Below, one piece after another: positions 14,974 to 56,748 of a stretch of DNA of 64,000 bases. The stretch is from Lepidodermella squamata (lineage: Eukaryota; Animalia; Gastrotricha). Both the position numbers and the translations under genes were made by a program. The stretch's first letter is position 1; every line of letters begins with the position of its first letter. The DNA lies in NCBI GenBank assembly GCA_047495785.1, contig JBLDXI010000055.1:868001-932000 (forward strand), in the 5' to 3' direction. A model generated the notes under the pieces. The model saw only the letters and a list, made by a program, of their open reading frames with translations, was not told where the DNA came from and did no database searches.

Positions 14974-15983
14974 ATGCCGGCAAACAAGAAACTGATAGCT
15001 GTTGTTGGCGCAAATGGTTCTCAGGGCGGAGGGTTGGCTAGGGCCATCTTGAAAGCGGGTGACAAGACAGATTTCGGCGTTCGAGCTATTGTCCGCGATC
15101 CAAACTCACATGGCGCTCAAGCCTTGAAATCCTGGGGTGCTGAGGTCGTTCAGGCCGATATCAACGACGAAGCTTCTATGGTGAAAGCCTTCCAGGGATG
15201 CTACGGCGCCTATTGTGTCACCTTTTTCTGGGAGAGGATGGACCCTGAGGAGGAGAAGCGCCAGGCGATGAACATGGCTAAAGCTGCTCAGTTAAGATAA
15301 ATCCTCGAGAGTTTATTCATTCATCTTTTTTTTACTTCAGAAAAGCTGGTTTGAAACATGTTGTTTGGTCAACGTTGGAAGATACCAGAAAGGTGATTCC
15401 ACTAGAAAGCCCCAGCATGCCAACTCTTATGGGCAAGTACAAGGTGCCTCATTTCGACGCCAAGGGCGAGGCAGATCACTACTTCATGGAGCTAGCTGTG
15501 CCAACAACCTTCATGGTCGCAACCTTCTTCTGGGACAACTTCATCGCATTCGGTATGGGGCCGAAGAAAATGCCTGATGGTACGATGGCCATCTCTCTAC
15601 CTCTCGGCAAAACGCATTTGCATGGAATTGCCGCTGAAGATATCGGAAAGTGCGCTCTTGGAATTTTCAATCGCCCTGATGAGTTTATAAATCGACGCGT
15701 GGGCGTTGCTGGTGAGTCGCTGACTGGCGAACAAATGGCGAAGAAAATGTCCCAAGTTCTTGGCAAGGAGATTCGCTACAACGAGCTTGGCTTTGATGAG
15801 TACCGAAAACTCAGCTTTCCTGGGTCTAAGGAGCTCGGCAACATGTTTCAGTACTACCACGACGCTGCTGCTGAGCTGGCTGCTATTCACAATGTCGAAC
15901 TGTCACGCGAGCTGAACCCTGAGCTGATGAATTTCGAACAGTGGCTCAAGAAAAACAAGGACCGCATTCCGATCGGTGAATGA
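14974..15983 (+). CDS. NmrA/HSCARG-like NAD(P)-binding protein, copy 1 (intron 15291-15340)
   Basis: VVGANGSQGG Rossmann motif, VVWSTLEDTR, VPHFDAKGEAD, EDIG, GNMFQY, LNP.L..FEQWL. Confidence 0.92.
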
Positions 15984-17117
15984 AAAAACCAATTGTCACC
16001 AAAATCACCAAGAACTGAATAACTTGAAGAGCAACTGTAAAGTTACGCCCCAATTTCATTTCCATGCTCAATGTTAAATCTTGATTACTTCATAAAATAA
16101 AGATACGAGTAAAGATTACAGTGAAATTTTAATTAAATTCGAGTTCGAAGTTGGATAAAGCTGAGATGGCACCATTTTTGGATAAAGTAGGATTTAAAAA
16201 TATTATTTGCGAAAATTTCCCTTTTTCAGTCTTCAACCTTTGTTACCTGAGAATTGTTGAACCTTTAGAAAATGCTGGAATGCTTCAAAAAATGATTAAT
16301 GAAAAGGGCTGAGCACATGCGCAATGAGAAAATTTTCCAAAATCTTGCTGTCACTCAATTTTGAAAAATTCTTCATGACAGAGAAAGCTCATGCAAAGGT
16401 CCGATGTGGGCTCTGTTTTTATCACTAATTTCGGCCGCTTCCTGGATCCGACCGCTGCGACCTAACTTCAGCCTCAGGCCGATATTTGGACACCAAGTGC
16501 TGTGTAGCGGTTTTTTGCGCGCAACTCAAGAAATTTGCATTGTGAAGCAAAGGTAAACAAAGGCGATTTCCAAGCTTGCCGGGACGAATTAAGGGTATCA
16601 AACTTAAGGTATTAGCGTAACTGGATGAGGTGGCCGAAATTAGGGCAACCGGTCCCTAATTCCGGCCAGGAGTCTAGGTGACTACAAAATTAGTTTTAAA
16701 TCGAGGTAAAATCATTCGGACTTGCGAAAACCGGCATTTGATAGTCCAAGGACTCTGTATTTGCCGAATATTTTCTAAAAATTATTCACCTGATTGGCAA
16801 AGTTGGAAAGACCCTAATAAGTGGCCAAACTTAGGGTGTGATGCTTTATAGACATGAAACATGAAATCACCGATTTACAGCTGCGTACAACCTATCTGCG
16901 TAAATCCAAACGAAGAAATGAACAATTTTTCAATTAAAATTTTTAAAATGAACAATCACGAATCACGGTGTTACGCTTTATAATTATTTGAAACCTGTCT
17001 CCTGTTGTCGCACCAGCTGTTGCGAGAGCTCGCGTGACCAATTTTCTCAACTCTTTTGGTCATTTTCTCAAATTTCACTCAAATTCAAAACAAAGTTGTT
17101 ACGCCTTTAGTTTAGCA

Positions 17118-20100
17118 ATGAAGTCGATAGTTCTCCTACTAACTTGTTTATTACTAGTTTTCACGCTCGATTTCGCCGATGGTATACGAGCATCTTCGCG
17201 CAATAATGCACGAAAAAAGCAGCAGATCAGCGAAGCTCTGAAGACTGAACTGCTAGCAGCAATTCAAAGCGACGAGACTTATTCAGTTGCTGACGTGCTG
17301 CAAAGATTTCCAAGTGGCCATTCAGTCAATTCGATAATAACTTACTCATTACGCCAGATTGACGCCAAGGAGCCGGCTGAGGAACCGGTTGACGAGCAGG
17401 AAATAGCCGACGAAGAGGTCGACACCTCGCCGACAGTCGCTGTTGATGTCACGCCGTTGTTTCTCGCCGCTCATTTTGACAAAGAAAATGTCGCTAAATA
17501 CCTGATTTCTCAGGGCGCTAATTTTACTGGTCGCTCGAATTTCTTCTTCGAACGCACTGCATTCCTTCAAGCCGCGGCTCGATCAAGCTTGAACACCTTC
17601 GATTTGTTCCTGAGGCAACAACGCCACTGGAAAGAAATCGTCACCGCTGTCAGTTTGGAGTTACGTGAGACCGTGTTTCATATCATAGCTGCCGATAAAT
17701 CAGAGGAAAACAGTCGCCAAATGTTGGAGAAATTGGAGGCGCTGTTCAAAAAGAAGAAGGCGAAATCTGTTATGGTGGAAATGTTGAATTCGCACGACAT
17801 CCACGGCCAAACGCCAATTCATCGAGCTGTAATCAATGGCAACGCGAACACAGCCCGTCTCCTTCTTATCATGGGTGCAGATTGCCATCGGTGGAACTTG
17901 GACAACGGCAGGTCAGCCCTGCATTTAGCAGCTTATCTCCGAAAGGTTGACGTTGTCAAGGTTTTGCTCGAGTCGAATCGTTGCGATCCTGAAACTCAAG
18001 ATTCTTGCGAGTTTTCTCTTGAAGATTACGCCGCCCGATCGCCATCCATCAGGCAGATCTTCGACAAATTCCAACCACAAAATCTTGAAATTCCGCTATC
18101 AAGCGAGAAGCTGAATATACCCTGCCTTGGCAAGCCGAAACAAGACGCTAATACTGGAGATGGCAAACGTATTCTCGCTGAAGTTGAAGCTTTGAAGCAG
18201 AAAAACAAAGAATCGGCAGCTGAAATACTCGAATTGAAGGCCGACTTGGAGAAGAAAAATCAGTTGACCTCGAAAATTTCCGATCTCGAAAAGACTGTTG
18301 CCGAGAAGACTGAGAAGATGGACGAGTTGAAAAACGAAACTGCTGAAAATCTCAGGCTGAAAAATGAAGAAATTACGGATTTGAAGCAAACTGTTGGCGC
18401 CAAGGTCGAAGAAATCAAAACGCGTGATGGGGAAATTTTGAGCTTGAAGTCGGCGGTCGAGAAGAAAGCCGAAGCTCTTCGAAGCCGAGAACAAGAAATC
18501 GCAGAGCTGAAGAAGAAGTGCAGCATTACAGATAATTCACAACGAATTTTGCCAACTACAACTACGCCAACAAACGAGCTTCCGAGTACAACTTCGGCCC
18601 ATTCAGAAGGTAAATTGATACAGATAATCAAAATTCCTCAACTTCAACTTTTACCAGAAACACCAGAGGCTCATACAACAGAGTCATCCTTGCCTCTTGA
18701 GGTCAAGACTACAACCGAAGAAGTGCCTGTTATTCCTTCGAGCACGTCTCCTTCGCCAACTTTGTCAATTACTGATCATGTTCCAGATGAGCAACTCCCT
18801 GAGTACACTTTTCAGCCAGATGTCGAGCAATTGCCGGGTTCGAATGGTGACGCTGATCCAGGCCATAGTTCGGCAAAGACTAGGCGTTCGGCCATTCTCA
18901 ATGGGCCAATCGAGTCTCTTGTCGTTATTGGATCTTCCGACGAGACATCCGCAGAGGAGAAGCCGCCGGTTGTATTTCAGCCACCACGAACAGCTCCGCA
19001 ATTCAAGCATACTACTTCCACAGTGGCACCACCGTCTGAGACGGAACCCTTTGTCGAGTATGCCCGAGTTGTTGTCGAAACCTACAACGAATCGTCACTT
19101 CCACTTGGCGCTGCGAAAGACGCCCATGACACGAAATTGGCGATATCAAGTAAAATAGACAGTGAAAATAATACTACGGAATGCATCGGCGGTATCGACA
19201 CGGCTACAGTCAAAGCGTTGAGGAATCAAGTTCATAATTTGTCGTTATTGCTGGATCGTGAGCGGCAGTTGTGGAAAAGCGATCGCGATTTCGTCGCAAT
19301 CACGACAAAGCGCCACACAAACGCGGCGCTGTTGATTGAAAAAGCGTTGAAATTCACCGGAATTATCGAGAGTATCCGGAAAGGCGCTGATGCTGGTGAC
19401 TCGGAAGACCTTTGGATTCGAAACCACCTCATTCGAGTCGATATTCACAATTTGGTGCAAATCCCTGTAAGCTTCTGAAAAGCCGTTGGAAATGTATAAT
19501 CTCGCCCTATTTTTGTTACCTAGAGACCGATCATGCCGGGCCAAAAGCATGCGCCCCCACCTTTGTCCAAGGTCGTGTTCACAATTTACGGCAATGGATT
19601 CACGGCGTCGGAAGCCTCTCGCTTATGTGGTCGTTTTGAAGGCGGTGTACTCGCTAATGTTCGCTCGAAATTCGAAGCAGACCTGCTCGAGCTTCCAAGT
19701 ATGAAAATTGTTAATTGAATTTTCAATTTTTTATTAATGATAATTTTTAGATGATGCACTTGATGACGGTCTCTGGGTTGGCCTGGTTCAAGGCCCGACA
19801 ATGGTGACCAACTCGACACTGACCAAATTCTGGTGGGCTGATGGATCGCCGCTATTCATCGCACCGGATGACATTTCAAATAGAAATTTCGCTGGACAGC
19901 TGGTGACATTTCATAATGAAGATCCAATGGTTGTTTTCGCCCGGTCTACAACCGAGCAGGACTCAAACGAACCTGGCTGTGGTAAACTGATCGGCATGAT
20001 CGAAGCGGTTTGAATTATTTTCTGAAATCCTATTGGTCAATTAATTGGTTTATTTCAGAAACTAGTTCCAGAGCAATGTGAGGCTCGATTAACGGCCGCG

Positions 20101-21011: not shown

Positions 21012-23417
21012 CTAGTGCATACTTGAGAAGGGACGTTGTGGTGTCACTGTTTGACGCGGAAAAGCTCTGTAAAGCATCAACGCCGGAGTCGAAGTGGCCA
21101 TAATAAGTAGGAAAGTGGCGACCGTTAACTGTTGCAAACTCGCTGAGCTGGACGACAACGCGACTACGGACAAAATAGCAGCAGCAACAAGAGTGAATTC
21201 GCTCGCTATAGCTAACCGGATTTGATTACTGTTCGCGAGAGTGACCTCAGCTGGTTCTTTCTTGTGCCTCAACCGATAAGCCATGAAAGCCGAGACGAAC
21301 AGCAACATCCCATGGCTAGCAAGAACTACGCCAAAGAACGTGTTGATCTTATCAGACCGGCAGTAAAATTCGAAAACATCGTTAAAAGTATCTCTAGGTT
21401 CGTCGTAATTCGACTCCTTTTCCACCTTAATTATCCAAACCTTGCTAGGCCCGTTCCAAAACAGGATGACCAGAGCGGTTACATTAAGGATTGAAAAGAT
21501 GAAAATAGCTGCAACAAAAAGCCATCGATTATGCTTGATATCCGAGCTGTTAAAGTGCCATTTCGATGATCGATTACTGCTGTGATGATGGTGTCGCGTC
21601 ATATTACCATCCTGATGAGCAGTTGAGGAAGCCATTAGAGCCGACGGCATCCTAGAAGAAGCACGACTGTAAGAATGCGTGGCTGATGAAGCGTGACGAG
21701 CGGCAACCCAGCTGAACAAAAGTCCGTGCAGCACAGTGAAGCCAAGTGTCGCGAAAATCATCCTCAGACTGCAGTACGTTGATCCTTCACCGTCTAATCC
21801 GGGGCTTTTCGCGAATAAAAAAGACGCGAAATTCAAGGTAAATGCAGCAACGATTAAAGGAATCGCATCGCCCTTGAAAATAAGTACAGATGTGAAGCTA
21901 CGAAATTTAGAGCGGAAAATAACTGCAGATAGCACAGCAGCTAGGATGGCACATGAGATAGTTGCCATTACAATGAATAAAATGAAAATATTTTGAGAAA
22001 TTCGCTTGATATTTTCCTTGTAAATAGCGCGGTCTCTAGGCGGCTTTCGATCAAGAGTGTGCCATTTGAAAGGATCGATTTGCGAATTTACAAAGGTGAA
22101 ATCACGCTTGGTTGAATCGTTATTATTCTGAAACAATATTTTAATGTTGAAAGCTTGGTTCAACGCGGCGGCTTGCGTTGAGACGTAGCAAGCATCATCT
22201 TCGATCTCGAGACGTGGGCTGTATTCAAATCTTCCCATTCTCAAGCCGACGAAGGGCGTCGTAGCTATCGTTTCATTCAGCACCTTCTGTATAGTTTTCC
22301 TATTACTCGCGAAATCTCTGAGAGACATATTGATCTTCACTAGCCTTTTCTCTAGCTCGTCAAGAACTAACAGGGGCTGTAAAACTCGATCGTGACATAG
22401 ATGGCGCTCGGGATAATCGTCCCGTTTGGTTCCGTTTACAAACTTCAGGAATAGCTCGTTGAATCCTTCAAGGTCGTAACCAAGCTGCGTTTTTCCAAAA
22501 TTTTCCATCGAGTAAACAACAGCCCCGACGTAGTAAATTGTTTTCATCAGCTCGTTAACCATTTTCTTGTTACATGGCGCAGAATCGCTGGCAGAAGCTA
22601 ATAAAGACGGATCGCGATTAGCTTGGTTGTACGGGGCGAGAAAGACAAATCGCTGCCCAACAACACCGCCTTTGTGACATAAGCAAAGGAAGTTTGTGAA
22701 GAACGGGAATTCGATGGCTTGAACGAAAATCACGCGGATTTGGCTGTTTTTCAGCATTCGAATAGAATTTTCGTCGACAAATGGCGTTGCCTCGAACCAG
22801 GCGACCTCAATATTTTCATCCAAAGCTGTCTGATAGAGATGAATAGCAACTGCGGTGTTGTATTCGTTTTCGGAATTTGCAATTATTCCAATTCTCTTCC
22901 ATAGGCCGATTCGTTTGATGAAAGCGATTACAGGATAGTTCGCAACTTCAGCCGAAGCTCGGCCTCGATAGACGCCCGGGTAGAGGCGCCTGTTATTTGT
23001 GAATCTCGGATTCAGGCAAGAAGTTGCGAGACTAATCAGGTCCAAGTGGTGAATAAAAGGTGCCACAGCTTTGCAACCTGGTGTAAAAGCTGGTCCGGTC
23101 ACAAGCGGGGATTCGTATACCGTGGTATCAGCAATCACCTGTGATGAAGTGTAGTTTCGGTCGAATTCTACCACTAGCTTGGCAGCGTAAATGCCATTGG
23201 CGCCCTCGTAATCGCTGTAAAGTGTCACGTGGTAATCGGGTAGAACGTCTGTTCGATTGTTGACAATTTCAACAACCATATCCTGGGCTGCATTGCAGCT
23301 GAATCCTGGGACTTGGTTTCTTAGGTTCAGCATCCTCAGCTGGTAGGGTTTTCTAGTTTGCCCCTGCTTGATTTGGAGAACCAGCATAATGGCTAGTATG
23401 AAAGTGTTGATATTCAT
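21012..23417 (-). CDS. Intact intronless class C GPCR-like receptor (Venus flytrap + 7TM, GABA-B-type architecture)
   Basis: Signal peptide, VNNRTDVLPDY, W+RIGII, IRVIFV, W..RKPPRD linker without a Cys-rich domain, seven TM segments with TM3/ECL2 cysteines. Confidence 0.85.
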   Translation of the reverse strand: MNINTFILAIMLVLQIKQGQTRKPYQLRMLNLRNQVPGFSCNAAQDMVVEIVNNRTDVLPDYHVTLYSDYEGANGIYAAKLVVEFDRNYTSSQVIADTTVYESPLVTGPAFTPGCKAVAPFIHHLDLISLATSCLNPRFTNNRRLYPGVYRGRASAEVANYPVIAFIKRIGLWKRIGIIANSENEYNTAVAIHLYQTALDENIEVAWFEATPFVDENSIRMLKNSQIRVIFVQAIEFPFFTNFLCLCHKGGVVGQRFVFLAPYNQANRDPSLLASASDSAPCNKKMVNELMKTIYYVGAVVYSMENFGKTQLGYDLEGFNELFLKFVNGTKRDDYPERHLCHDRVLQPLLVLDELEKRLVKINMSLRDFASNRKTIQKVLNETIATTPFVGLRMGRFEYSPRLEIEDDACYVSTQAAALNQAFNIKILFQNNNDSTKRDFTFVNSQIDPFKWHTLDRKPPRDRAIYKENIKRISQNIFILFIVMATISCAILAAVLSAVIFRSKFRSFTSVLIFKGDAIPLIVAAFTLNFASFLFAKSPGLDGEGSTYCSLRMIFATLGFTVLHGLLFSWVAARHASSATHSYSRASSRMPSALMASSTAHQDGNMTRHHHHSSNRSSKWHFNSSDIKHNRWLFVAAIFIFSILNVTALVILFWNGPSKVWIIKVEKESNYDEPRDTFNDVFEFYCRSDKINTFFGVVLASHGMLLFVSAFMAYRLRHKKEPAEVTLANSNQIRLAIASEFTLVAAAILSVVALSSSSASLQQLTVATFLLIMATSTPALMLYRAFPRQTVTPQRPFSSMH

Positions 23418-23713
23418 AGCTGTGATTATGATTTTAGGAAAAATTCTAAATGCAGTTTGCAAATATTGCTTTTACTGCCTAAAATAAAGCCAACGCCAAC
23501 TTGTTCCGATGAGGGGTATTTTCCATCTCTCTCAAGGATCAGGTTACCAAAATAATGTAAAATGGAAAATAGATGCGTGTCGGCGGACAATGCATCCATA
23601 GCACGTTAATATCCTACTCATTTTAATATTCGAGCCAAATAATATTTAGCTTGAAATTTTAGGTTGAAAAGACAAAATAAGCGGCTAAAGTCAATTTATT
23701 CAGTTAATAGTTC

Positions 23714-24460
23714 TCAACAGAGGCTCCAGCCATCATGGCCTCGAACAAAAAATGGCTGGATGAATCCCTGGTTCTCAGTAGGATAAAATAGGCAACCTTC
23801 AAACTTCATAATCTTTTCCTCGTCGCTTACAATCAGAACTCGGGATCGAAAGTTCATAAAATCGTCTCGCATGATTTTCAACACGCTATAGGCCAATTTC
23901 CGCAGACAGCGCGGTAACGGTTGGGTTCTAGCCATAGCCGCAAGTTCATCAGCCAGTTCCAATTCGAGTTCCACGGGAGAGAAGTGCTCAGTGATGTCGT
24001 CGAAATTATGCAGCTCTGGTAGCCATTTTTCTTGAAATTTTGCAATATCTGCCAGCATTTCAGCATTCAGATTACTGCTCCGGTAACTTTACTTTTCCAT
24101 CAATCACAGCACAAGCAAAATCGGCATCAAGCCTTAATTTCCGAGTGGTTAGAGCATAGGTCTTTTCGATGAAAAAAATTGAAGAAAAAGCTGGGTGAAC
24201 TACGTGTTTGTATATCGGAAATAGACAGGGACACTTATCGAAATCTAACTCGAGCTCTTTCGACAGCGGACAGCGGGTGACATTGGCGACATCCTGTTGC
24301 GAAGACAATCACGTCAACTTTTGCCGTAGTCCCACCTACGAAAAAGGCCGTTTCGCCAGCAGCTTTCACGAGATTAGGCCGAAGTTTGACAGGGCACTTG
24401 TCGTTTTCCAAAATCCAGAAAGGCTTGCAACGATGCCATGATAAATACACCTCAGGGCAT
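23714..24460 (-). pseudogene. Truncated, frameshifted duplicate of the 3' half of the FMO at 25178-26512
   Basis: Three ORF fragments in different frames (YLSWHRCKPFW, FPIYKHVVHPAF, MLADIAKF) nearly identical to the neighbour; the 5' half is absent. Confidence 0.85.
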
Positions 24461-24563
24461 ATCTTTTATTAGTCTCATTAGTCTGAGTATTCTGACCTGG
24501 ACGCACTGTATAGGAGGGAAAAGACGCGCGCATCTCGATTGGCACGTTGTACATTTTCAAAAT

Positions 24564-24900
24564 AATGGCCAGCAACAGAAATACGGCTTCGGCATCGATC
24601 GAGCCTCGAGCCGCGATTTCGAGATTGGGGATTTGGGATTATTTATTTATGAGCGTTAATGGATTAGATATTATGCTAAATCGACACTTCGTTAATGTGA
24701 TTGCTGTGCTTACCGAGGGAAGAGCAACAGTCTGGGTTGTAATCTTTGTCAAATTGGCAGAAGAAGTCGGGGAAGGAAAAGGCTGAACTATTTTCGCCTC
24801 GCAACAAGACACCTTGGTGATCATATCCTTCGGTACCTGGCCGTGAGATTCCCTCAGTATCGGAAGATCCAACAAGGATCTCAATAAAACAAGGAGAGCG
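24564..24900 (+). pseudogene. Deleted and frameshifted duplicate of orphan gene 26785-27387
   Basis: Shares N.YGFGIDR, NRHFVNVIAV, ATVWV.IFV.LAEEVGE and EDP..IK segments, with an internal deletion and frameshifts. Confidence 0.75.
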
Positions 24901-25177
24901 CAATTCCCTAGCAAATCTCTGAATGTTTTAGTAGTAATATTGTTTTGCATCGACTGAAAAAATGGTCAACGCCAACTTGTTCCAATTAGGGTTATTTTTC
25001 ATCTCTATCTCAAAGATCAGATTACTAAACTGTCAAATCGAAAATTGACTCTTGCCGGCGGAACGGAATACTCGCATTCGAGGTATGATAATGCTACTAT
25101 TCATATTCATACTATTCAAGTCGAGTCAAATAGGTTGAAAAAACAAAACAAGCGGCTATATTCAATTTATTCAATTT

Positions 25178-26512
25178 TTAGTTCTCTACCGGAACAAACG
25201 GACAACCGTCGCATTTCATCAGCTTTTCCTCGTCATGTTCAATTTGAACGTAGGATTGAAAGTTCATAAAATCGTCACGCATGATTTTCAACAGGCCATA
25301 CACCAATTTCCGCATACAACGCGGTAGAGGCTGGGTTTTTGTCATAGCTGCAAGTTCGTCAGCCAGTTCCAATTCAAGCTCCACAATAGGGAAATACTTC
25401 GTTACGTCAACTTCAGCAACTTTCGGCAGCTCTGGTAACCATTTTTCGTGAAACCTAGCAATATCTGCCAGCATTTCGGATTGATTCGGTAACTTGATAG
25501 ACCCGTCAATCACATCGCAAGCAAAATCGGCATCAAGCCTCAGTTTACGAGTTGTAAATGCAAAGGCTTTTCCAATGAAGAATATCGAAGTAAAAGCTGG
25601 ATGAACAACGTGTTTGTAAATCGGAAAGAGACATGGGCATTTATCGAAATCCAACTCGAGCTCTTTCGACAGCGGATGACACTGTCGATACCCTGTTGCG
25701 AAGACAATTGCGTCAACATTTGCCGTAGTCCCATCTACAAAGAACGCCGTTTCGCCAACAGCCTTGACAAGGTTCGGCCGAAGTTTAACAGGGCATTTGT
25801 CGTTTTCCGAAATCCAGAATGGCTTGCAACGATGCCAGGATAAATACACCTCAGGGCAGAGCTTTGCCAAATTTGAAGTTATATCCATAGCACCAAATGA
25901 GGTGCCAACAATTAGCACCCTCTTGCCTGAGAGTGAAGCCGGCTCGTGAAGTTCTTGAAAATGTGAAATCGATCCAGAAAATCGCTTTATGTCAAATTCG
26001 GGTGGTATGAAAGGCTTGCGATGCTGCCCACAGCAGAAGAAAACGTAGTTGAATGGCTCGGCCTGAACCTCACCGGTCGCAAGATTTTTGAACTCAACCA
26101 TCGGCGTTTCATGGTCAGCTGGGTTTCGATAAACGTTCTTCACCAGGGTGGAGAACCGGATATATTGCAAGAGATTGAATTTCAGCGCGAATTCTTGCAG
26201 ATATCGAAGATGTTCATAATGCATAAGGAATGTTCTGTTGGTAATGTGTTCGGGCATTGGAAAGTCCGGATGTATCTCCATATTAAATCGATAGGTATTT
26301 GCCTGCAAGCCATGGTACATGCTGCTTTTGATCGGAAAGCCTTCGCTCGATGTGTCTGGCTTTTCGACGCTCGGTATCCATTCGCCGCCAGCCTGATCAG
26401 AACCTTCGAAACAAACAACTTCAAGGTCAGGAAAGATCGGGAGAAGCCGCTTTTGAATAGTGTACAAGGCGACCAAACCGGCAGGTCCAGCTCCAATCAC
26501 AGCTATTCTCAT
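25178..26512 (-). CDS. Class B flavin-containing monooxygenase (FMO-like), intronless
   Basis: GAGPAG FAD motif, GGEW, SSMY.GL..N, FSGSISH (FMO motif), second Rossmann region LIVGTSFGA, FATGY, PIYKHVVHP. Confidence 0.9.
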   Translation of the reverse strand: MRIAVIGAGPAGLVALYTIQKRLLPIFPDLEVVCFEGSDQAGGEWIPSVEKPDTSSEGFPIKSSMYHGLQANTYRFNMEIHPDFPMPEHITNRTFLMHYEHLRYLQEFALKFNLLQYIRFSTLVKNVYRNPADHETPMVEFKNLATGEVQAEPFNYVFFCCGQHRKPFIPPEFDIKRFSGSISHFQELHEPASLSGKRVLIVGTSFGAMDITSNLAKLCPEVYLSWHRCKPFWISENDKCPVKLRPNLVKAVGETAFFVDGTTANVDAIVFATGYRQCHPLSKELELDFDKCPCLFPIYKHVVHPAFTSIFFIGKAFAFTTRKLRLDADFACDVIDGSIKLPNQSEMLADIARFHEKWLPELPKVAEVDVTKYFPIVELELELADELAAMTKTQPLPRCMRKLVYGLLKIMRDDFMNFQSYVQIEHDEEKLMKCDGCPFVPVEN

Positions 26513-28201: not shown

Positions 28202-28237
28202 ATTTGAAATAAATTTCACGAGCAGAACGGAGCGTAA

Positions 28238-43123: not shown

Positions 43124-45916
43124 GGCTATACATTCGCGAATTTTGACCAAGCTTTGAAAGATTTTACGGCGAATAGAACGGATATTTCATTCGATTACCC
43201 GTCAAGATACGCCTGTCATGATGTTATTATGCACTCAATATTGACACTAAATGAATCTGATGCGATTTTGAAGCAGCAACATCAACTATCTCTAAAGGAC
43301 TGAATATCGAATCGGGATATAGTCTTCAAGGTTGTCAAAAATGCTGCAGCAAAGGTTAAATTCGTCGGCGCGAGGGTAGGGCCTATGGCCTGGGACGAAA
43401 ACGGCGAACTGAATGAGGACATGTTCGTGCGACAAGTCGTCGGAAGAAAAGTTCGATCGGTCGCAAAACTGGAATACAATGAAAATAACGGCAGTATGCA
43501 AGGTGTCTACAGCTACAAATTGATCGAACCACCAGTTTTTGCGACTCATTTCGGGGGATCTCCTAAAGACTTATCGGCGATCGAAAATAGGATCGCGCAA
43601 TGTGGCGAAATTCTGATAGCTTCAAGCTTCATCGTAGCTGCCTTAATTTCAATTTCACAACTCTGCATTTTCTCAAAGTCTCTCATGAATGGCTCTAAAG
43701 TTGAGGGGTACCAGCTTTTTTATGGGGTTAAGGCTAAAACTGGCATTTTGTTATCACTTATCATCTCCAATGTTTCCGCTGTTCTCATTTTAGTTGGGGT
43801 TGACTACTTTCCTTGGCTAGAATGCCAACTAAGACCTTTATTTGTCGCCTTTGGCCCAAGTTACATACACAGCTTTCTTATTAGTCACCTCGTGGCCTTT
43901 GCAAAATGTATGACATTCAGACTAAGACGACGTAGGAGAAGGGCGAGATCATGGGGTGTTATCCCTAAATCTCTGAAAATGGACATCGAAATAACATCCA
44001 ACCCTCGACAAACCGCTAGACAAATAATTGCTGTTTTCGCCTTAATTTTTCTGCCTTGCATGCTTGGTTTGATTGTGTGGATATCAGGAGATAGTCTGCA
44101 GTTACAGCTGTCTATATCCGAGACCGCGTTTGACGACGAAGAGGACACCTATTTCACAGTCACGTCGCCCGAATGTGGTTCAACTGATGGGCAATTCTGG
44201 ACTGCAGCTATTTCAGGGTACCATGCGTTTTTACTGGTCCTGGCGAATGGATTATCACTAGAGTTGCGCCGGAAAACATTTCCGAGAGTGGTCGAGTTCA
44301 GTGTCCGCTTGGTTCGCCTCGCTTCGTTAAACGCCCTGGGTAACGTGGTGGCGTTGGTTTTGATCATCGCTGTCTTATCGACCTCGACGATGCATTGCAT
44401 TCGACCGGCCATATTTTGCTTCGGCTTGCTCACTTACTCGCTAATTACCGGTATTATTTTGTTGTTTCCTCACCCAGTGAGCAAAAAGAGACAAAGCCGC
44501 AAGGTGTCGGATCCATTTCCTCTTAATAATTGAGGCTTTTAATAATTTTTCAATAAAATTGTCTTGGTTCAATGCATAATTAACGGAAAATCTTGCTGCA
44601 AATGTACAGTAGCCTGAACAAATCGAGAACAACTTTATTATCCGACATGTCTGTTCTATCCGGCTAATTTGAGTTGTTTTGTTCAACAACTCAAAATGCG
44701 TGGCTTATGACAACAAATATTGCCTTACGAAAAGCCGAAATCTGCTAATCAGACCGCCTGATAGACTTTCGATATACGTGTCAGCAGTTCAACCTAATTT
44801 ACGCCATGAATTCGCGAAAACGAGTAAAACTGTCCGATCGAACTTCAATCACAACAGACGTCGAAAAACGCCTGACGATCGGAAAACTATTGGATGAAAT
44901 TAGACCTTGGTTGGATGAAAAATGTCGGACCCGAAAAATACCAGAATAATGGGTATTATTTGGAAAAATACTTGATCTTTGAAAATCTAAACACCAATTC
45001 GATGAAATAATAATTAACTCCCCCTTCTCCCTAACCTATACTGCGGGGCATTTGGCTCAGAAAGCCGTGCCGATCGGGCCATTAAAGTAGCCCCCTACAG
45101 CGTCACCTGTGACGGAAGATCACAGACGGACCGTGGCCAGGTGGGACCTGCTTAAACCACCCTCCGTCAGATTGAACCTAAACTATCCCGTGTTCCCTAA
45201 GAAGTTTCCCATATAGGCTACTAGGATTTCGTTAGAAATCCCAGTTACACCCGACCCGTCTTGAAATTGCGTCGCAATTTCCCATGAAACTTTCGTTTCG
45301 GCCAGTCTTTTAAATAAAGAAAGAAATGTAAAATGTTCAGAGGATTTACGTACATTTTAATGAATCTATATATCATTATAACTGAGTATGGCTCAATTTC
45401 GGGCTCTCATTTGCTTGTGTAAATTTTGCTTCATGCGACCATCGGAGGCTCCATGGAGAGATTCCACGCAAAAAATCATCAAGCTGTGACCAGAAATAAA
45501 TAGGTTGTTGAAAAAATGCTACCTTTAACCCCTACTTTTTGTCAGCCTTAGCCATCTCGAAACCTGGAAACGTGTAACTACAGGCTTGAGGTCGTGGGGC
45601 CGGATCATTAGCTGTTTTGTTATAACATCAGGTTAAACATTAAATTCACATTAGCGCCAATTTTTACATGGTTGTATGATACCGGGCTGCTATTATCCCA
45701 CAGGCTCGTGGCGCTCGTGCCGTCTAATCTTCCCTGTTGCGAACAGGCCGGCCGCGCCATATAGCAGGCAGGCATGTGACAAAAACAGCTTACATTACAT
45801 GCTGCTGGCTCTCCACTTCCTACGCTCTTTAACAGCTCAAGTGATGAACGCGATGATGACAAATACAAAGCTGGGATTCCTTCACCCCACGAGCAGTTGT
45901 ATAGCTCGATAGAAAA

Positions 45917-48900
45917 ATGAAAATCCCCGGACTTGTGCTTCAATTAATCGCAATTGGTTAGTATGGCTATTTTCGATTTTTAAACTGAATTTTGAAAATC
46001 ATTTAACAGGTATTGTATCTTGTCAAAAGTACGCGGAGTTGGCGGCTAAAAAATGCGTGGGAGGAGATGATATTGGCGGGCCTTTCGATTCGTACGAAAC
46101 TTGCGTCGATGCTTGTAACAGCTTACGAACATGCCTTGGATTCAACTGGGAGGAAGCTACTAAGCTTTGCACTCCGAAGCCCAACGATTGCGAAATTATC
46201 GATGATCAATCTTCAACTTTTCACTTCAAGCCGAGGGTTATCCAAAACTCACCCCCACGGTCCCAACTATCGAGTGTTGTCGAGGTAAATTCCCTAAACG
46301 TTGAACCTGACAGTGTCGATACGACGAGATCAGCTGTGGCTTCAACGGGTAATCCGTTGAAATACGGCGATTATGACGTTAAAATGGGCTATCGGTGTTC
46401 TGGAGGATACAGCTGGCGGTTGGGTGATCCAAAGAACACGCTTATCGAATGTCGGGAATTATGCAACACCATCGCTAATTGTTACGGCTTCACCTGGGAC
46501 CTGGCCTATGGGCAATGTTACACAACTACAGGCGGATGCATCCTAAGCCCAATGCCGCATTACATTTTCTACGTCAGGCCGGCTTTTTACGCCCAACTGC
46601 TTCAGACCACAACGCTGCCGACTACGACAGAAGCGCCAGACGTTAGGTTGAACTATCAAACTGTCAACAACGCATTTTGTACCGGCGAAAACAGCGCGTT
46701 AACTGAGCCTAAGGACGACTTGGATAAATGCTTAGAATACTGTGAACCTAATGGTCGCTGCCTTGGTATTAACCTGATTAAAACCAATAACACATGCGTC
46801 CCAGTGTCGACTGGTTGCTCGGTATCAGCTGATAGCACTAAAGATTTCTACAAGAAAATCAAGCAATTAGTAACTACTACGTCAACTGTCCCGCCCAGTA
46901 CCACTTCTACTGAATTTAGGGTGGATGATTTGTTCAACAAAAAAGCTGAACCAGCGTCTTATTTCGCAGCGATTGGAACGCGATGTGTCTCATCGCGAGA
47001 TAGCATCATCGACTCTGGGCCGCATCCTGATTACTGCAGGCAGAAATGTGATGCTAGGATCGACTGTGTTGGCTATAATTGGATGCAGTCGGCAAGTGTA
47101 TGCCAGGTGGTCACTCTCGGATGTACCGAAGGGTCCAATTCAGCCTATATTTACTACCGGAAAGAGACGAAAAACAAAACAGCTGATGCGATTGATTTGT
47201 TGAACAAAATGTCAGCTCAGGACATTTTAATCAGCCGTATTAAATGGGAAAGTAGTGTCGTCCTACCGAGCTATCGCGTCGCTACGGGTTGGGCCTGTAC
47301 CGGCGACGAGTCGACCCGAATTAGTACTGACCAAAAAACTGCTCTGCAATGCGCGGCGATTTGCGACAAAGCTCCGTCTGGTATCTGCCAGGGTTTTACG
47401 GTCTATCCTAATAAGCGACTCTGCGTTGTTAGAACCCTCGACTGTACTATTGAGCAGGATGACGAAAATGGCGCGATTCTTTACCGGAAGAAGCTGATTT
47501 CGTATCCGACTGTTCCGACGACTACAACAACAACGCCGGCGCCCACGACGACTACAACCACAGCCTATACTACAACGATTCCTCAACCTCTTGAGGTTAA
47601 CCCGATGGCGGAGAATGCTCCTCAAATTTTCTACTTCAGAGATTACGAAGTTCGCCCGTCCGTTAGATGTACTGGTGGCTTATCTACGCAACTATATTCC
47701 CTCGCAGTCCCCCTTCGTGACTGCTTCGATCGCTGTGATAAAATGGAAAGCTGTATAGGGTTCAATTGGCATTTAGAGACAGCTCTTTGCATCGCGATGT
47801 CTAAGGGTTGCAACATGATGCGGAACAACCCCGGTTTCGCGTTTTACCTAAAACCCGGCCAGGGTAATGACGCTGCGATTGATATTGGAACTACGACTCA
47901 AGTTCCGAGAACGACAGAACGGCAATCTAGTAACTTCTACCCTACAAAGGATAGTCGGTGCATCGGCGGGAAATCGGAGATGATTGGCCGACCGAAATCT
48001 TCGATTTACCAATGTTTAGAGGAATGCGATATAGCTGATGGCTGTTTCGGGGTGAACTGGATCCCGCGCGGCGAGTGTCACCTAATTTCATATGGCTGTG
48101 CTATGAATCTTGCTAGTAACTTCATTTTTCTCATGAAGACGTCAAACCAGAGCTTTGATGTCTACGGCTACATCAGATCTGAGTTAAGACCGTCTACCAC
48201 GACTACGACTGAAGCTACAACAACGACTAGGCCGACGTATGGCTACGTGATTCAGTTCGGATATCGCTGCTCTGGGGTTCGCCAGGCTTTGAATGATCCG
48301 ATGCTTTTGCTGAAAAACTGCGCTGAGGCTTGTAACGGAAATGATGCATGCCTAGGTTTCAACTACGATTATACATCCGAGCTTTGTATTACAACATCCG
48401 CGTATTGCGACCTTGAGCCTTATCCTTACTACGAGTTCTATCGAAAACCGAATCGCTACCCAGCTACTACGTCGACGACCCCGCGGTATACTAGTACAAC
48501 ACCGACGACAGAGATGGCGAAGAGTGAACGCGACCTGGGCGCGAATTACCTGAGAAGATTTGGCTCCCTATGCGCGGGCAGTCGGACGATTGGCGAGTTC
48601 CTGCGCGACCTTGACGAGTGTTTTGCGATGTGTGATAATTTGCCGGAGTGTTACGGCATCAACTGGCGGCCAACCCAGCGGCAATGTGCTGCTAGGGTCA
48701 AGGGCTGCGTGTTTGTTGAAGATCGAGGATCTGTTTTCTACGAAAGGGTATTCACTATGACGACCGAAGACGTGAGGGCTATAGGGATGATAGTGGACGA
48801 GCTTCCGACCACCGAATGGTTCTATCCAACCACCACAACTACTACGACGACAAGAACGACGCCGACAACGAGAACTACCAGACCGACGACTCCCAGCACA

Positions 48901-49197
48901 ACTTCGACTACGACCACCACCACTACGACTACTACTACGACCACAACCCGGCCGACGACTACCACTACGTTGAGAAGAACAACAACGACGACGACCAGAC
49001 CAAGGACTACAACAACGACGACTGTGCCAACTACAACTGAGGAAGAAATAGCGCTACTAACCGAGCCAGTTAGTACTTGGGCGACTAGGCGCAGGAGATC
49101 GACGACTGCTGCTCCAACGACGACTACGACCCAGTTGGCGACGGTAATGCTTATCACACGTCGTCGTCGAACAATGGCTCCCTTAAGACGAGGATGA
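45917..49197 (+). CDS. Secreted protein with nine PAN/Apple-like six-Cys repeats and Thr/Arg-rich mucin-like tail (intron 45957-46009)
   Basis: Spliced signal peptide MKIPGLVLQLIAIGIVSC; repeated C...CxxxC....CxG(F/I/V/Y)(N/T)W...C...C...FY units; poly-Thr linkers. Confidence 0.85.
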
Positions 49198-49383: not shown

Positions 49384-49455
49384 GGCTCAGTAGCTTAGTG
49401 GTAGAGCGTCTGTCTCGTAAACAGAAGATCGCGGGTTCAATTCCCGCCTGGGCCT
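49384..49455 (+). tRNA. tRNA-Thr (anticodon CGT), identical second copy
   Basis: 72 nt identical to 37693-37764. Confidence 0.95.
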
Positions 49456-50208: not shown

Positions 50209-51211
50209 ATGCCTGCTGACAAGAAGACCATCGCTGTTATTGGCGGCACTGGCCACCAAGGCATCGGCCTCATCCGCGCCATCATGACCGAGGCTGACAA
50301 GGGCGAGTTCGCCGTCCGCGCCATCACCAAGGACGTCACCTCGCAAACCGCGCAGTGGCTGAAGAAGAACGGCGTCGAAGTTCGCGATGTCGATGTTGTC
50401 GACGAAGACAAACTGGCCGAAGCTATCAAGGGATGCTATGGCCTGTACGCTGTTACCTTCTACTGGCACACCATGAACCCCGAAGAAGAGCTGCGCCAAG
50501 CTCGTAGCATGGCGAATGCCGCCAAGTAAAAACTCCAGCTTAAAATATTTAACCCTGATTTTTTCGTAATACAGGAAAGCCGGTGTCAAGCATGTCATCT
50601 GGTCAACCCTTGAGGACACTCGGGAAGCTCTGAAAGACACTGACGTCCCGACGCTGTTCGAAAAGTTCAAGGTGCCGCCATTCGATGCCAAGGCTGAGGC
50701 TGATCGCTTCTTCTCGGAAAGCGGCGTCCCAACCACGTACTTCATCACGCCGTTCTACTGGGAGAACTTCATCGATATGGGCATGGAGCCGAAGAAGTCG
50801 TCGGATGGCAACTTCGAAATCGCCGTTCCGATGGGCAACAAGCGAATTGGCGGCATGGCGGCCGAGGACGTTGGCCGATGCGCCCTGACCATTTTCAAGA
50901 ACCCAAGCGAGTACGCCAACAAGCGAGTCGGAGTTATGAGCGAGGCGTTGACTGTCAACGAAATCGCTGAGAAGATGTCGCGCGTTCTTAGCAAAACAAT
51001 CCGCTATCGCGATATCAGCGTCGATGACTACCGCAAGACCAGCATTCCTGGTGTTAAGGAGCTCGCCAACATGTTCGTCTACTACAACAAGTGTGAGGAC
51101 ACTGTTTTGAAGATTCGCTGCCCGGACACTGCCCGCAAGCTGTGCCCGAACGTCATGAACTTTGATGCCTGGCTCAACAAGTACAAGGACCTCATCCCGA
51201 TTCGCGCCTGA
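50209..51211 (+). CDS. NmrA/HSCARG-like protein, copy 6 (intron 50526-50574)
   Basis: VIGGTGHQGIG, WSTLEDTR, VPPFDAKAEAD; strongly C/G-ending codons. Confidence 0.92.
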
Positions 51212-52622: not shown

Positions 52623-53621
52623 ATGCCTCAAGAAAAGAAAATTATTGCAGTTGTTGGTGCAAATGGTAAACAAGGCGGTGGTTTGATTCGAGCTATTCTG
52701 AACGAAGGCGAGTCAAGTGAGTTCAAGGTACGCGCTCTGGTGCGAAACGTCAATTCAGAGCATGCTCGATTTTTGAAACACCAACCCAATGTCGAGGTCT
52801 GCGCCACGAATATTACCAATGAAGAGTCTGTCCGTCATGCGGTCAAGGGCGCTTATGGCCTGTATGCTGTTTCATTCTACTACGACCACCTGAACCCGGA
52901 GGAGGAGATCAATGAAGCGAAAAACATGGCTGCAGCTGCCAAGTAATACCCAACCTTAACGATAGAATATTTTTAAATTTTATTCAGAGCCGCGGGCGTG
53001 CAACACGTGATCTGGTCGACCTTTGAAGACAGCCGCAAACTCTTTGAAAATCCCGATGAAATTGAAACCATGAAAGAGCGATTCAAGGTACCGATGTGCG
53101 ATGCGAAAGCTGAAGGTGATCAGTTCTTCGACCCATCAATTACAACGTATCTGCTGCCATCATTCTACTGGGAGAATTTCATCGACAGCGGCTATCAGCC
53201 TCGCAAAACATCACCCGGTCACTGGTCACTGTGGATGCCACTCGGCGAGAAAAAGTTGCCTGGAATTGCGGCTGAAGATATCGGAAAATGCGCGTTGGCT
53301 ATTTTCAAAAATCGAGGCGATTACATTGGAAAACGGGTTGGAATAATGAGCGAGGCTTTGAGTGGTAACGAAATGGCGCTACAAATCGGTAAAGCTATCG
53401 GTCGCGAGGTTGACTACAAGCCATTTTCACTGGACGAATATCGCAAGTCTGGCTTCGCTATCCCGCCCGAGCTCGTCAATTTATTTGCTTTTTACGAAAA
53501 ATGTGAGGCGAAATTGTTGGCAAATCGTAACGTAGACGAGACACGCCGCCTCGTCCCAGATTTGCTGAGCTTTTCATCGTGGCTGGCTAAATATGGCAAA
53601 TTCATGCCTGTTGCTGTTTGA
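52623..53621 (+). CDS. NmrA/HSCARG-like protein, copy 7 (intron 52943-52987)
   Basis: VVGANGKQGG, WSTFEDSR, VPMCDAKAEGD, AAEDIGKCA. Confidence 0.92.
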
Positions 53622-53859
53622 CGATTGCGCAATAAACGCTGCTGTGTGCGCGCACTGACTCTTCTAGAAACTTCTATTAATAGAACATTCCAGATGCGCG
53701 CGTGTAAACACATTATGCAATGTACTTACGCTACACTATAAATACCCCGCTTGGCTCGCATTCAATTTTAATAATAATCACGCTTTGTTTTGCTTTTGTC
53801 ACTAATAGATACTTTCGAAATTTCAATTCTCCTGCTTTATTGTTGCTGACTACTAAATC

Positions 53860-54892
53860 ATGCGATTTCAAATCTCACGTGAAAATTCTGAAAATGAGCC
53901 GAAAATTATCGCTATTGTTGGCGCGACTAGCCGACAAGGCGGCGCCCTCGCCCGGGCGATTCTGCGCGATGGCGAATTCAGAGTGCGAGCCATTGTTCGA
54001 ACTCCATCGTCTCCGAGCGCCCAGCAATTGAAGAAAATGGGCGCTGAGTTATTCGTTGCCGATACGAACGACGGCAAGCATCTCACCGAGGCATTTACGG
54101 GTTGCTTTGGCTTGTTTGGCATGACCTTTTACTGCAATAATCTCAATCCAAATGAAGAGCTACGGCAGGGGCGCAATATGGCTAACGCAGCAAGGTGAGT
54201 TTTTGAGAAAATTATTTATTTCTAAATTGTTCATTCATCAATAATACAGATCAGCTGGCGTGAAACACGTGATTTGGTCGACTATGGAAGATACTCGAGA
54301 ATTTCTGCCAACCGCCCGCTTGCCTACCCTGGATAGCAAGTACAAAGTGCCGCAATTCGACGCGAAAGGCTCAATGGACTACTATTTCTCCGAGCTCGAA
54401 ATTCCGACAACTTTCCTGAAATCCTCGTTCCTCTACGACAATTTTCTCGCGACTCCTTTCGCCCCGAAATTCGGCCCTGAAGGCTATTCGGCGCTGCGGC
54501 TGCCGATCAAGGCAAACAAACGAATCGCTTGCATTTCAGTCGAAGACATCGGCAAATGCGCTCTAGGAATATTCAAGCGTTCCGACGAGTACATCAACAA
54601 AAGCGTTGGCATTGTCGGCGATGTGTTGACGCCGGAGGAAATCGCCGCGAAAATGTCGACGGCTCTTGATCAAGACATCCGATTCGAAGAAGTCCCATTT
54701 GAAGACTACCGGCAGTTGCGGGTTAAAGGCGCTAAACCAATTGCTAACATGTTTCGATTTTTCAGCGACTGCGAAACCGAACTGCTGGCAGTTCGGAGCC
54801 GGGATGAATCACGGAAATTGAACCCGGAACTGCGGTCATTCGATTGCTGGCTCGAAGAACACAAGGACGAAAGTTCGACATTTTCGGCATGA
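53860..54892 (+). CDS. NmrA/HSCARG-like protein, copy 8 (intron 54195-54249)
   Basis: IVGATSRQGG, WSTMEDTR, VPQFDAKG, ANMFRFF; start codon uncertain. Confidence 0.88.
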
Positions 54893-55425
54893 CTATAATT
54901 GGTTTTTTGTTGAAATTTTACCTCTAAATCACAATACTCTTGTTCTTTCGTTGTATATCGCTCAGAATTTTTATCTCATAAATTTGGCTAATAAAATTGT
55001 TTTGTTTTAAAACGTCTGTTGGCTCGGAATTTTGTTCGGGTTTTTTTATTGAAATTTAGACGGATGAAGGTTTTGTTTACACTTGTAGCGAGGTTTATTA
55101 CGCTCACGTTGAGAGCTAGGAAATTAGCAGGTGCAATAGAGACTATTTTGTTGTGGTACCTATTGTCTCGCACTCGAGCACCGGAACAGCACGCAACTGC
55201 TCAGTTTTAGGGCTTACAAACAAGCATAAAAATATTATGCTTAAAAATTCTGCAGAATTTTCGCATGCGAAACACTTTATCTTGTTATCTTTTATAAAAT
55301 AGATTTTATCTATATCACTTATCTCTAGAGCGGTTCTATCTGACGATTACGCAATGAGGATAACAACTATCTGGCCTGTTTCGGCAGACATAACAGTTAT
55401 TCTTTAACATCACAAACGTCTTACG

Positions 55426-56748
55426 ATGCGTATAGCTGTAGTGGGAGCTGGACCAGCGGGCTTAACAGCTCTGAGAGTGATCCAGAGCCGGATCGAGTCG
55501 AAACACCCCGATGTCGAAATAATCTGCTACGAAGGCTCAGACCGGGTTGGCGGCGAATGGGTCCTGAGCGCCGAGAAGCCGGACACTTCCAACGAAGGCG
55601 TGCCTATCGCTAGCAGTATGTACAAAGGCCTGCAGGCTAACTCGTTCAAAAACTCTTTCCGCCTCCATCCTGACTTTCCTTGGACCGATGAAATGACGCA
55701 ACGAACTTTCCCGATGCAATACGAACTCTTGAATTATCAACGAGAGTTCTGTAAGCACTTCAACCTGGACAAATACATCCGCTTCAACCACCTGGTTCTT
55801 AATGTCAGCCGTGATCCGGCTAAGTCTGGCGGTCTTCTTGTCGACGTAAAAGATTTGACTCGAGGCGAGAAGAGGACGGAAAGTTTCGATTATTTATTCA
55901 TGTGCAATGGCCAGCATCGGAAGCCGTATATCCCTAATACTGATACTTCCGAATTTAATGGCCTGGCGATTCATTACCATGTACTTCACGACCCAGCCAG
56001 ACTTGCTGGCAAGCGAACACTAATCATCGGCAGTGGCATGGGGGCTGCTGATATTTTCATCGCTTTCGCCAAAGTCTGTTCAAAGGTGTCGGTCAGCTAC
56101 AACACGCAGAAACCATTCTGGCTGCGAAAAGATTACTTGGAAAAATATCAACTGAAGCCGAAAATGACTAAAGCTGTTGGAGATACAGTGTATTTTAGCG
56201 ACGGAACATTGGATCAATTCGATGCCATAGTTTACGCGACTGGTTTTCTACAACATCACCCGTTTTCGCCTGATCTCGAGCTAGATTTCAGTCACGGCTG
56301 CCTGTACCCCCTCTACAAACACGTCGTCCATCCTAAGTGCCCCTCAATTTTTTTCGTGGGGAAAGGTCGCATTGTCACCCCAAGGATGTTATGGCCTAAC
56401 GCAGAATTCGCAGCTGGTGTGATTAATGGAAACATAAAATTACCCAGTGAGCAGAAAATGCTGGATGATATCGATAGATTTCAAGACTATTGGCGAGCTG
56501 AATTGGACAAATCGGATCAATATAACCCATTGGAATTTATCCCACTATTCGAGAGTCAATTAGCTGTCGCTAATGAACAGGCAAAATTAGCCGGTATAAC
56601 GCCTTTGCCGGAAATGTTTCGAAAACAAACCTACGCTGGCTTAGGAATAATGATGAAAGATATATTCAATTTTCGTAATTACAAGTTGTTGTATCCCGAT
56701 GAAAATGACAATGAGCATTTTAATGACGAATTATTTGCTTTAGAATAA
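55426..56748 (+). CDS. Class B flavin-containing monooxygenase (FMO-like), intronless
   Basis: GAGPAG, GGEW, SSMYKGLQAN, FNGLAIH, IIGSGMGA, YATGF, PLYKHVVHP. Confidence 0.9.
   Translation: MRIAVVGAGPAGLTALRVIQSRIESKHPDVEIICYEGSDRVGGEWVLSAEKPDTSNEGVPIASSMYKGLQANSFKNSFRLHPDFPWTDEMTQRTFPMQYELLNYQREFCKHFNLDKYIRFNHLVLNVSRDPAKSGGLLVDVKDLTRGEKRTESFDYLFMCNGQHRKPYIPNTDTSEFNGLAIHYHVLHDPARLAGKRTLIIGSGMGAADIFIAFAKVCSKVSVSYNTQKPFWLRKDYLEKYQLKPKMTKAVGDTVYFSDGTLDQFDAIVYATGFLQHHPFSPDLELDFSHGCLYPLYKHVVHPKCPSIFFVGKGRIVTPRMLWPNAEFAAGVINGNIKLPSEQKMLDDIDRFQDYWRAELDKSDQYNPLEFIPLFESQLAVANEQAKLAGITPLPEMFRKQTYAGLGIMMKDIFNFRNYKLLYPDENDNEHFNDELFALE

Follow-up and report, generated by a model that had tools for sequence, protein, structure and literature searches.

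The 64,000-nucleotide (nt) window analysed here, positions 868,001 to 932,000 of contig JBLDXI010000055.1 of the gastrotrich Lepidodermella squamata (assembly GCA_047495785.1), contains an island of approximately 42 kb in which genes of two NADPH-linked families, the NmrA-like proteins and the flavin-containing monooxygenases (FMOs), are mixed with those of a lineage-restricted orphan family. The gene content of this stretch of a small-intron invertebrate genome was established by open reading frame (ORF) listing, Pfam searches and tblastn mapping, and the NmrA gene models were obtained with a small spliced-alignment script. Pfam and tblastn place eight NmrA genes, three FMO genes, one FMO remnant and the orphan genes in the island, with receptor, mucin and ankyrin genes interspersed among them (Table 1).

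An earlier note on this DNA had counted eight NmrA-like genes, and all eight can indeed be spliced into intact proteins. Its two intact FMO genes and one broken FMO gene were recovered, together with a single remnant in place of the several that it mentioned, and its three-member orphan family is present as three loci, of which two are intact and the third is degenerate. The two direct same-strand FMO/NmrA neighbour pairs that it described are both present. In the first, on the minus strand, NmrA2 sits 171 nt downstream of FMO_B, and is also convergent with orphan 2, with 36 nt between them; in the second, on the plus strand, NmrA8 precedes FMO_C with a gap of 533 nt.

Table 1. Features of the NmrA/FMO/orphan island and the adjoining gene, in window coordinates
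Feature	Positions	Strand	Description
NmrA1	14974-15983	+	2 exons (14974-15290, 15341-15983), 319 aa; Pfam NmrA, 82 bits per exon
FMO remnant	23771-24465	-	residues 217-444, frameshifted; tblastn 68-89% identity to FMO_A
Degenerate orphan 1 copy	24582-24867	+	pseudogene, third member; tblastn, self-blast
FMO_A	25178-26512	-	intact single exon, 444 aa; Pfam FMO-like, 150 bits
Divergent intergenic region FMO_A/orphan 1	26513-26784		272 nt; two CACGTG boxes (26621, 26672)
Orphan 1	26785-27387	+	200 aa, no Pfam family
Orphan 2	27656-28201	+	181 aa, no Pfam family
NmrA2	28238-29321	-	3 exons (29321-29187, 29130-28955, 28904-28238), 325 aa
FMO_B	29493-30811	-	broken at codon 300 (near 29907-29911), reading frame open otherwise
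NmrA3	32498-33552	-	3 exons, 315 aa
NmrA4	35417-36475	-	3 exons, 314 aa
NmrA5	38101-39205	+	3 exons, 332 aa
NmrA6	50209-51211	+	2 exons, 317 aa
NmrA7	52623-53621	+	2 exons, 317 aa
Candidate heat-shock-element cluster	53657-53695		upstream of NmrA8
NmrA8	53860-54892	+	2 exons, 325 aa; long branch in tree
FMO_C	55426-56748	+	intact single exon, 440 aa; Pfam, 128 bits
DUF6492-like gene ('glycosyltransferase-like')	56767-58164	-	type-II-membrane-like protein, 465 aa, no Pfam match

NmrA, FMO and orphan genes of the island

The eight NmrA proteins are 314-332 residues long, and their genes are interrupted by GT-AG introns of 45-58 nt, one position of which, after an AAK motif and before a KHVIWS motif, is common to all eight. 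Matches to the NmrA family profile PF05368 reach 82-83 bits per exon (cut-off of 27). The Rossmann motif GxxGxxG is present in seven copies, with GxxSxxG in NmrA8. The catalytic tyrosine of the YxxxK motif of short-chain dehydrogenases/reductases (SDRs) is a histidine in HSCARG and a methionine in NmrA. This tyrosine is replaced in the window copies as well, by histidine in NmrA1, 3, 4 and 5 (aligned with HFDGK of HSCARG), by glutamine in NmrA2 and NmrA8, by proline in NmrA6 and by methionine in NmrA7. Pairwise identity among the copies is 39-65%, except for NmrA3 and NmrA4, which are 88% identical at the amino-acid level. The proteins align with human HSCARG (E 8e-28), and NmrA1 matches KstA11 with E 1e-24. 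KstA11 is an NmrA-family relative of ActVA-ORF4, an enzyme that depends on NAD(P)H and acts on quinone-type substrates (PMC10108166). Given the likeness to HSCARG and the match to KstA11, a sensor role and an enzyme role are both possible for the window proteins, which may bind NADP(H) and act in redox sensing or regulation.

NmrA1 is the copy nearest to bacterial homologues, its exon 2 being approximately 60% identical to bacterial NmrA/HSCARG proteins of 316 residues, and NmrA8 is 45-54% identical to bacterial proteins. A tree was calculated from the eight window copies, 16 bacterial sequences and the NmrA gene carried by L002, a metagenome contig (6.6 kb) from a distant relative; it places the window and L002 genes on one side of a branch and the bacteria on the other (support 94/94). 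Both this grouping and the common intron position fit a single old acquisition of NmrA from bacteria, which would have been followed by intron gain and then by expansion. NmrA-like domains are listed among the horizontally acquired genes of a sponge (PMC4784904), consistent with bacterial descent. That the closest database matches of the NmrA genes are bacterial could also be read as contamination or mis-assembly mimicking an animal cluster. We see next to no chance of such an artefact: all eight genes have spliceosomal GT-AG introns with a common position, one of them is seen spliced in RNA, the genes are interleaved with a long interspersed nuclear element (LINE) and with class-C G-protein-coupled receptor (GPCR), PAN-domain and MADF genes, and in a DNA run the tested stretch is covered throughout, by two haplotypes.

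The FMO genes were assigned with the class B FMO profile PF00743, for which FMO_A and FMO_C (scores in Table 1) and the N-terminal part of FMO_B (127 bits) all exceed the cut-off of 22 bits. The FAD site GAGPAG is found in all three. Their NADPH motifs (GTSFGA in FMO_A, GIGFGA in FMO_B and GSGMGA in FMO_C) align with GSSYSA of the Methylophaga FMO, and the stretch SSMY.GLQAN, with the flavin-hydroperoxide Asn, aligns with SSMYRYLWSN in Protein Data Bank (PDB) entry 2xve. The ATGY/F motif is present as FATGY/YATGF. Within the FMO-identifying motif FxGxxxHxxx[Y/F], the F, G and H are kept, and the last position is Leu in the three window copies as well as in the FMOs of L002 and of L001 (4.2 kb), the latter carrying an FMO without NmrA. 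Since FMO_A and FMO_C keep every cofactor motif, they are most likely soluble class B oxygenases, predicted to oxygenate nucleophilic small molecules with FAD, NADPH and O2.

In the FMO tree, the window genes and those of L001 and L002 form a separate long-branch clade (100/100), which falls outside the bacterial trimethylamine-monooxygenase (Tmm) clade, the insect FMOs and the vertebrate FMOs; within it, the FMO remnant is the sister of FMO_A (100/99). The full length of FMO_C can be aligned with an insect-type FMO of 425 residues (PDB entry 5nmw) and with bacterial FMOs. A second, different invertebrate FMO lineage is formed by a 426-residue FMO at positions 10001-11281 of L003, a 558-kb eukaryote-like metagenome contig, and a Capitella FMO, both of which lie at the base of the bacterial Tmm clade (100/100).

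In FMO_B, the five nucleotides tacac (29911-29907, coding strand) stand in place of the single Lys codon of FMO_A and FMO_C. Its second haplotype in the DNA run is without 29907 and 29909 and was reconstructed as an in-frame TAA at codon 300. The lesion on one haplotype and the reconstructed stop codon on the other indicate that FMO_B is broken on both alleles, and an intact FMO_B on the other allele is thereby ruled out.

The two intact orphan proteins are 31% identical to each other (E 2e-18), and no Pfam match was obtained for the family. In a set of 1.8 billion representative proteins, orphan 2 has a sole homologue, P0241 (E 7e-23), which belongs to a relative. A first structural model of the orphan family was poor (predicted local distance difference test, pLDDT, of 58); the model of P0241 (pLDDT of 80 and predicted template-modelling score, pTM, of 0.80) is a two-lobed alpha/beta protein. 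The comparison of this model with the PDB gave no convincing match (best Z-score of 5.3), Foldseek returned none at E 0.001 or better, and the only match in shape was to an unnamed Ascomycota family (TM of 0.64). Language-model atlas features for the family score at most 0.83. As modelled, the orphan family is a lineage-restricted two-lobed alpha/beta protein of approximately 190 residues.

Three sequencing runs were compared with positions 25100-31000 (5,901 nt); the contigs used show coverage, not expression levels. Run X1 (DNA) spans the whole segment with two haplotypes. Run X2 is RNA-like: it has a joint at which precisely the 50 nt of the NmrA2 intron are missing, the ends of the intron reading GT..AG on the minus strand. 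Its coverage extends over FMO_A, NmrA2, FMO_B and orphan 2, is weak over orphan 1, and is absent from the spacer between orphan 1 and orphan 2 and from the outer flanks of the segment. All five genes tested are thus transcribed. Between 27880 and 28800 the two haplotypes of the DNA run differ at many sites per 100 nt, locally well over 5%, and the sample is therefore highly heterozygous or mixed.

Duplication, promoters and neighbouring genes

Self-blast of the window reveals how several of these loci arose. The segment 23491-24906 duplicates 24967-27311 at 80% identity, less 1264 nt lost in an internal deletion that comprises the 5' halves of the FMO gene and of orphan 1 and the region between the two genes; within the segment, 24724-24906 matches 27130-27311 of the orphan 1 gene. 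This one copied block accounts for both the single FMO remnant and the dead third orphan. NmrA3 and NmrA4 belong to a second block duplication, of 80% nt identity. The sister groups of the NmrA tree are physical neighbours, namely (2,(3,4)) with support of 100/99 and (5,(6,7)) with support of 95/78. Nearest paralogues are physical neighbours, and FMO and orphan fragments and the broken FMO_B are present beside intact genes, as in birth-and-death evolution. The surviving copies are under purifying selection, with a ratio of non-synonymous to synonymous divergence (dN/dS) of 0.16 for NmrA3/NmrA4 at a dS of 0.39. A clade of NmrA2 and NmrA8 is rejected by the approximately unbiased test (p-AU of 0.0009); the FMO-adjacent copies are therefore not sisters, and a recent duplication of an FMO-NmrA pair is ruled out.

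The best explanation, to which we assign a probability of roughly 0.6, is that the island consists of NADPH-linked stress or xenobiotic genes in separate tandem arrays, each shaped by birth and death, within a duplication-prone neighbourhood around an old NmrA-FMO linkage. Each family would have grown by its own local tandem or block duplication and decay, and the genes would not have been assembled for one pathway. They are presumably environmental-response genes, for stress or xenobiotics, that draw on the NADPH pool, and their interleaving may be a by-product of repeated unequal crossing-over around the old NmrA-FMO neighbourhood.

The promoters look individual to each gene, apart from the divergent region that is common to FMO_A and orphan 1. 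CACGTG and TATA boxes are found in the promoters of NmrA3 and NmrA4, and a candidate heat-shock element (HSE) with a TATA box in that of NmrA8. The HSE cluster, 177-203 nt upstream of NmrA8 and in front of a TATAAATA box, comprises the only perfect trimeric HSE of the 64-kb window together with two units of one mismatch each. A weaker pair of HSE-like elements is located 18-22 nt upstream of FMO_B. CACGTG occurs 15 times in place of the 9.7 expected, with several of the occurrences falling within the coding KHVIWS motif. The promoter word GGTCAAATTT has no exact match and is not enriched, with 13 one-mismatch matches for 8.9 expected, and when 5-7-mers were screened for enrichment without bias in 11 independent upstream regions, the best p was ~1e-3, not significant for 490-2187 tests.

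The gene at 56767-58164, which had been described as glycosyltransferase-like, did not bear out that label: it has no Pfam match, and language-model atlas features relate it, at 0.95-0.98, to DUF6492 and to clusters of hypothetical proteins from molluscs and cnidarians. A partial copy of its 3' half, 89.5% identical in self-blast, is present at 61093-61875. This DUF6492-like gene is probably not part of the arrays. It would have to supply the conjugating step if the island were a true biosynthetic cluster, with FMO and NmrA as tailoring enzymes. At least three unrelated families are indeed found inside 42 kb, two of them enzyme-like (FMO and NmrA) and the third the orphan family, and NmrA-family and flavin enzymes act in tailoring in bacterial polyketide clusters (PMC10108166). 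Such a cluster is nevertheless very improbable. No scaffold-forming enzyme (polyketide synthase, non-ribosomal peptide synthetase, terpene cyclase or similar) or transporter was found among the ORFs of at least 120 residues or in the inter-gene gaps. Many redundant paralogues are present, not one gene per step; the DUF6492-like family occurs widely in molluscs and cnidarians, and its gene here has been partially copied in tandem; and the arrays are interrupted by receptor, mucin and ankyrin genes.

Several further elements adjoin the NmrA genes. Two tRNA-Thr(CGT) genes, at 37693-37764 and 49384-49455, are 98.7% identical over 76 nt and have dissimilar flanks; each precedes an NmrA gene, by 337 nt in the case of NmrA5 and by 753 nt in the case of NmrA6. 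Just ahead of NmrA1, a 262-residue ORF (14011-14799) has no Pfam family and gives a weak language-model lead (0.82) to mollusc aerolysin-like pore-forming proteins. NmrA1 is followed by an ankyrin-repeat and coiled-coil gene (17034-19478), in which Pfam finds no kinase domain.

Elsewhere in the window, a LINE (6528-10954) encodes ORF1 (6528-8051) and an apparently intact ORF2 (8048-10954, 968 residues), the latter with endonuclease and reverse transcriptase. Three class-C-GPCR-like genes with an ANF_receptor domain (11127-13196, 21012-23462 and 40580-44533) share 23-41% mutual identity, and the first exon of the third is flanked by a pair of inverted repeats of 298 nt and 97% identity (39877-40174 and 41482-41779). 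The gene at 46039-49197 encodes a 1052-residue protein composed of repeated PAN/apple domains with Thr/Pro-rich mucin-like linkers.

Linkage of NmrA and FMO genes

The direct adjacency of FMO and NmrA, to which the earlier note drew attention, is at chance level: at least two same-strand FMO-NmrA adjacencies appear in ~30% of shuffled gene orders within the island. What departs from randomness is only that the families are found in one place.

Synteny in relatives, which had been proposed as a check, points both ways: L002 carries NmrA near FMO, L001 has an FMO without NmrA, and the orphan homologue of a relative lies away from both. The L002 FMO belongs to the same clade as the window FMOs and is 38% identical to them, and the L002 NmrA gene shares ~40% identity and the intron position with the window copies. 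The other genes of L002 (HSP20, cathepsin L and Miga) have no homologue in the window, and neither the order nor the orientation of the genes is constant in the two window pairs and L002. The P0241 gene sits beside genes for a Cys-loop receptor and a nuclear receptor, neither FMO nor NmrA was found within 2.6-8 kb of it, and no orphan-like gene was found ahead of the FMO of L001 or L002. As regards further relatives, a scan of JGI metagenomes with the FMO profile yielded nothing above 30% identity, and a search with NmrA8 exon 2 yielded bacterial-type full-length proteins only.

FMO was found in none of three bacterial NmrA loci, and this type of NmrA in none of 20 microbial FMO-like loci. A joint bacterial origin of the NmrA-FMO pair was rejected on the basis of this lack of pairing in 23 microbial loci and of the FMOs themselves, which share only ~31-33% identity with bacterial Tmm and are placed outside the Tmm clade.

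The observations that weigh against separate arrays concern the ties between the families. FMO_A and orphan 1, which diverge from a common region of 272 nt, were duplicated as one unit. An older duplication of the pair, with {NmrA2,3,4} grouped with NmrA8, is not rejected (p-AU of 0.22). Glutamine at the position of the HSCARG histidine occurs in exactly NmrA2 and NmrA8, the two FMO-adjacent copies, a coincidence of 1 in 28 that was noticed post hoc. Finally, L002 holds NmrA (-), HSP20 (+) and FMO (+) inside 3.5 kb, with NmrA 1.2 kb from FMO and HSP20 between them; such proximity would be improbable if the families were placed randomly, so that the linkage looks old and may be kept by selection.

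The earlier note had proposed a co-regulated cluster. The transcription of five genes and the recurring NmrA-FMO proximity are in keeping with that proposal, and its common pathway and co-regulation found no support. In its functional form, the families would make up a co-regulated NADPH-linked detoxification or redox-stress module, linked by selection for a common chromatin or regulatory domain: the FMOs would oxygenate xenobiotics or dietary toxins, the NmrA/HSCARG-like proteins would sense the FMO-perturbed NADPH/NADP+ ratio or reduce quinone-like products, and the orphans would be accessory binders. Such a module would account for the recurrence of NmrA-FMO proximity in a distant relative with a different gene neighbourhood, for the transcription of all five genes tested in one RNA-like run and for the divergent promoter of FMO_A and orphan 1, two genes that were duplicated as one unit. 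It could also draw on the CACGTG boxes of the FMO_A/orphan 1, NmrA3 and NmrA4 promoters, on the HSE-like elements before NmrA8 and FMO_B, and on the match of NmrA1 to KstA11 in a family of which some members are NAD(P)H-dependent enzymes (PMC10108166). We nonetheless regard it as rather unlikely. No promoter word recurs among the families more often than chance would allow, the adjacencies within the island do not exceed chance, and order and orientation are unlike in the two window pairs and L002. The relative's orphan homologue is not near FMO or NmrA; one of the two FMO-NmrA pairs holds a dead FMO, FMO_B; the SDR catalytic-residue position varies among the copies (H, Q, P, M); and none of the 23 microbial loci has an FMO beside this NmrA type or the reverse.

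Doubtful, and in our judgement plainly unlikely, is an ancient NmrA-FMO partnership, with one partner derived from bacteria, that has been linked since before the split from the L002 organism and works as an animal redox or detoxification cluster, with the Gln-carrying NmrA copies as FMO partners and the orphans as new accessory subunits on the FMO-shared promoter.

In animals, unrelated enzymes of a single pathway are, to our knowledge, rarely encoded in clusters, and a real cluster, especially one derived in part from a horizontally acquired gene, would be notable. Dense interleaved tandem arrays, the reading preferred here, easily resemble a pathway cluster. The case that remains is that of a bacterial-type NmrA gene that would have gained an intron and spread to at least eight copies, and that stayed near a divergent soluble FMO clade in at least two organisms. 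This NmrA-FMO linkage and the putative heat-shock-type promoter of NmrA8 are leads on NADPH-linked stress handling.

Comparison with known systems

HSCARG/NMRAL1 is an NADPH sensor of the atypical SDR type. The human protein (PDB entries 2exx and 3dxf) and the window NmrA proteins belong to a common Pfam family and have in common HxxxK in place of YxxxK, the GxxGxxG motif and an Arg-rich NADP site. However, the window copies are nearer to the bacterial 316-residue proteins (up to 60% identity), four of the eight are without the histidine (Q, Q, P, M), and at least eight copies are present, compared with a single gene in humans. The bacterial 316-residue NmrA/HSCARG proteins (from Terriglobales, Manganitrophus, Hymenobacteraceae and others) show 44-61% identity, equal length and equal motifs; unlike these, the animal copies contain spliceosomal introns, group separately in the tree (94/94) and have undergone tandem expansion. 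Streptomyces ActVA-ORF4 and KstA11 are NmrA-fold, NAD(P)H-dependent proteins encoded beside oxygenases (PMC10108166), like the pairing in the window. The Streptomyces polyketide clusters, however, hold a polyketide synthase and one gene per step, whereas no scaffold enzyme was found in the window.

The window FMOs resemble Methylophaga mFMO (2xve) and the insect pyrrolizidine-alkaloid N-oxygenase-type FMO (5nmw), which are short soluble class B enzymes of ~440 residues with common motifs (GxGxxG for FAD, GxSxxA/GxGxxA for NADPH, the Asn and ATGY/F; E 1e-42 to 1e-45). They differ from both in having ~30% identity to them and in forming a long-branch clade of their own.

The CYP, GST and UGT genes and the mammalian FMO cluster are tandem environmental-response arrays in animals. 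Like the window, these arrays show local birth-and-death evolution with pseudogenes beside intact copies, purifying selection on the survivors and a separate promoter for each gene. The window differs from them in that it interdigitates two unrelated NADPH-linked families and orphan genes, and in that one of these families, NmrA, is of probable bacterial descent.

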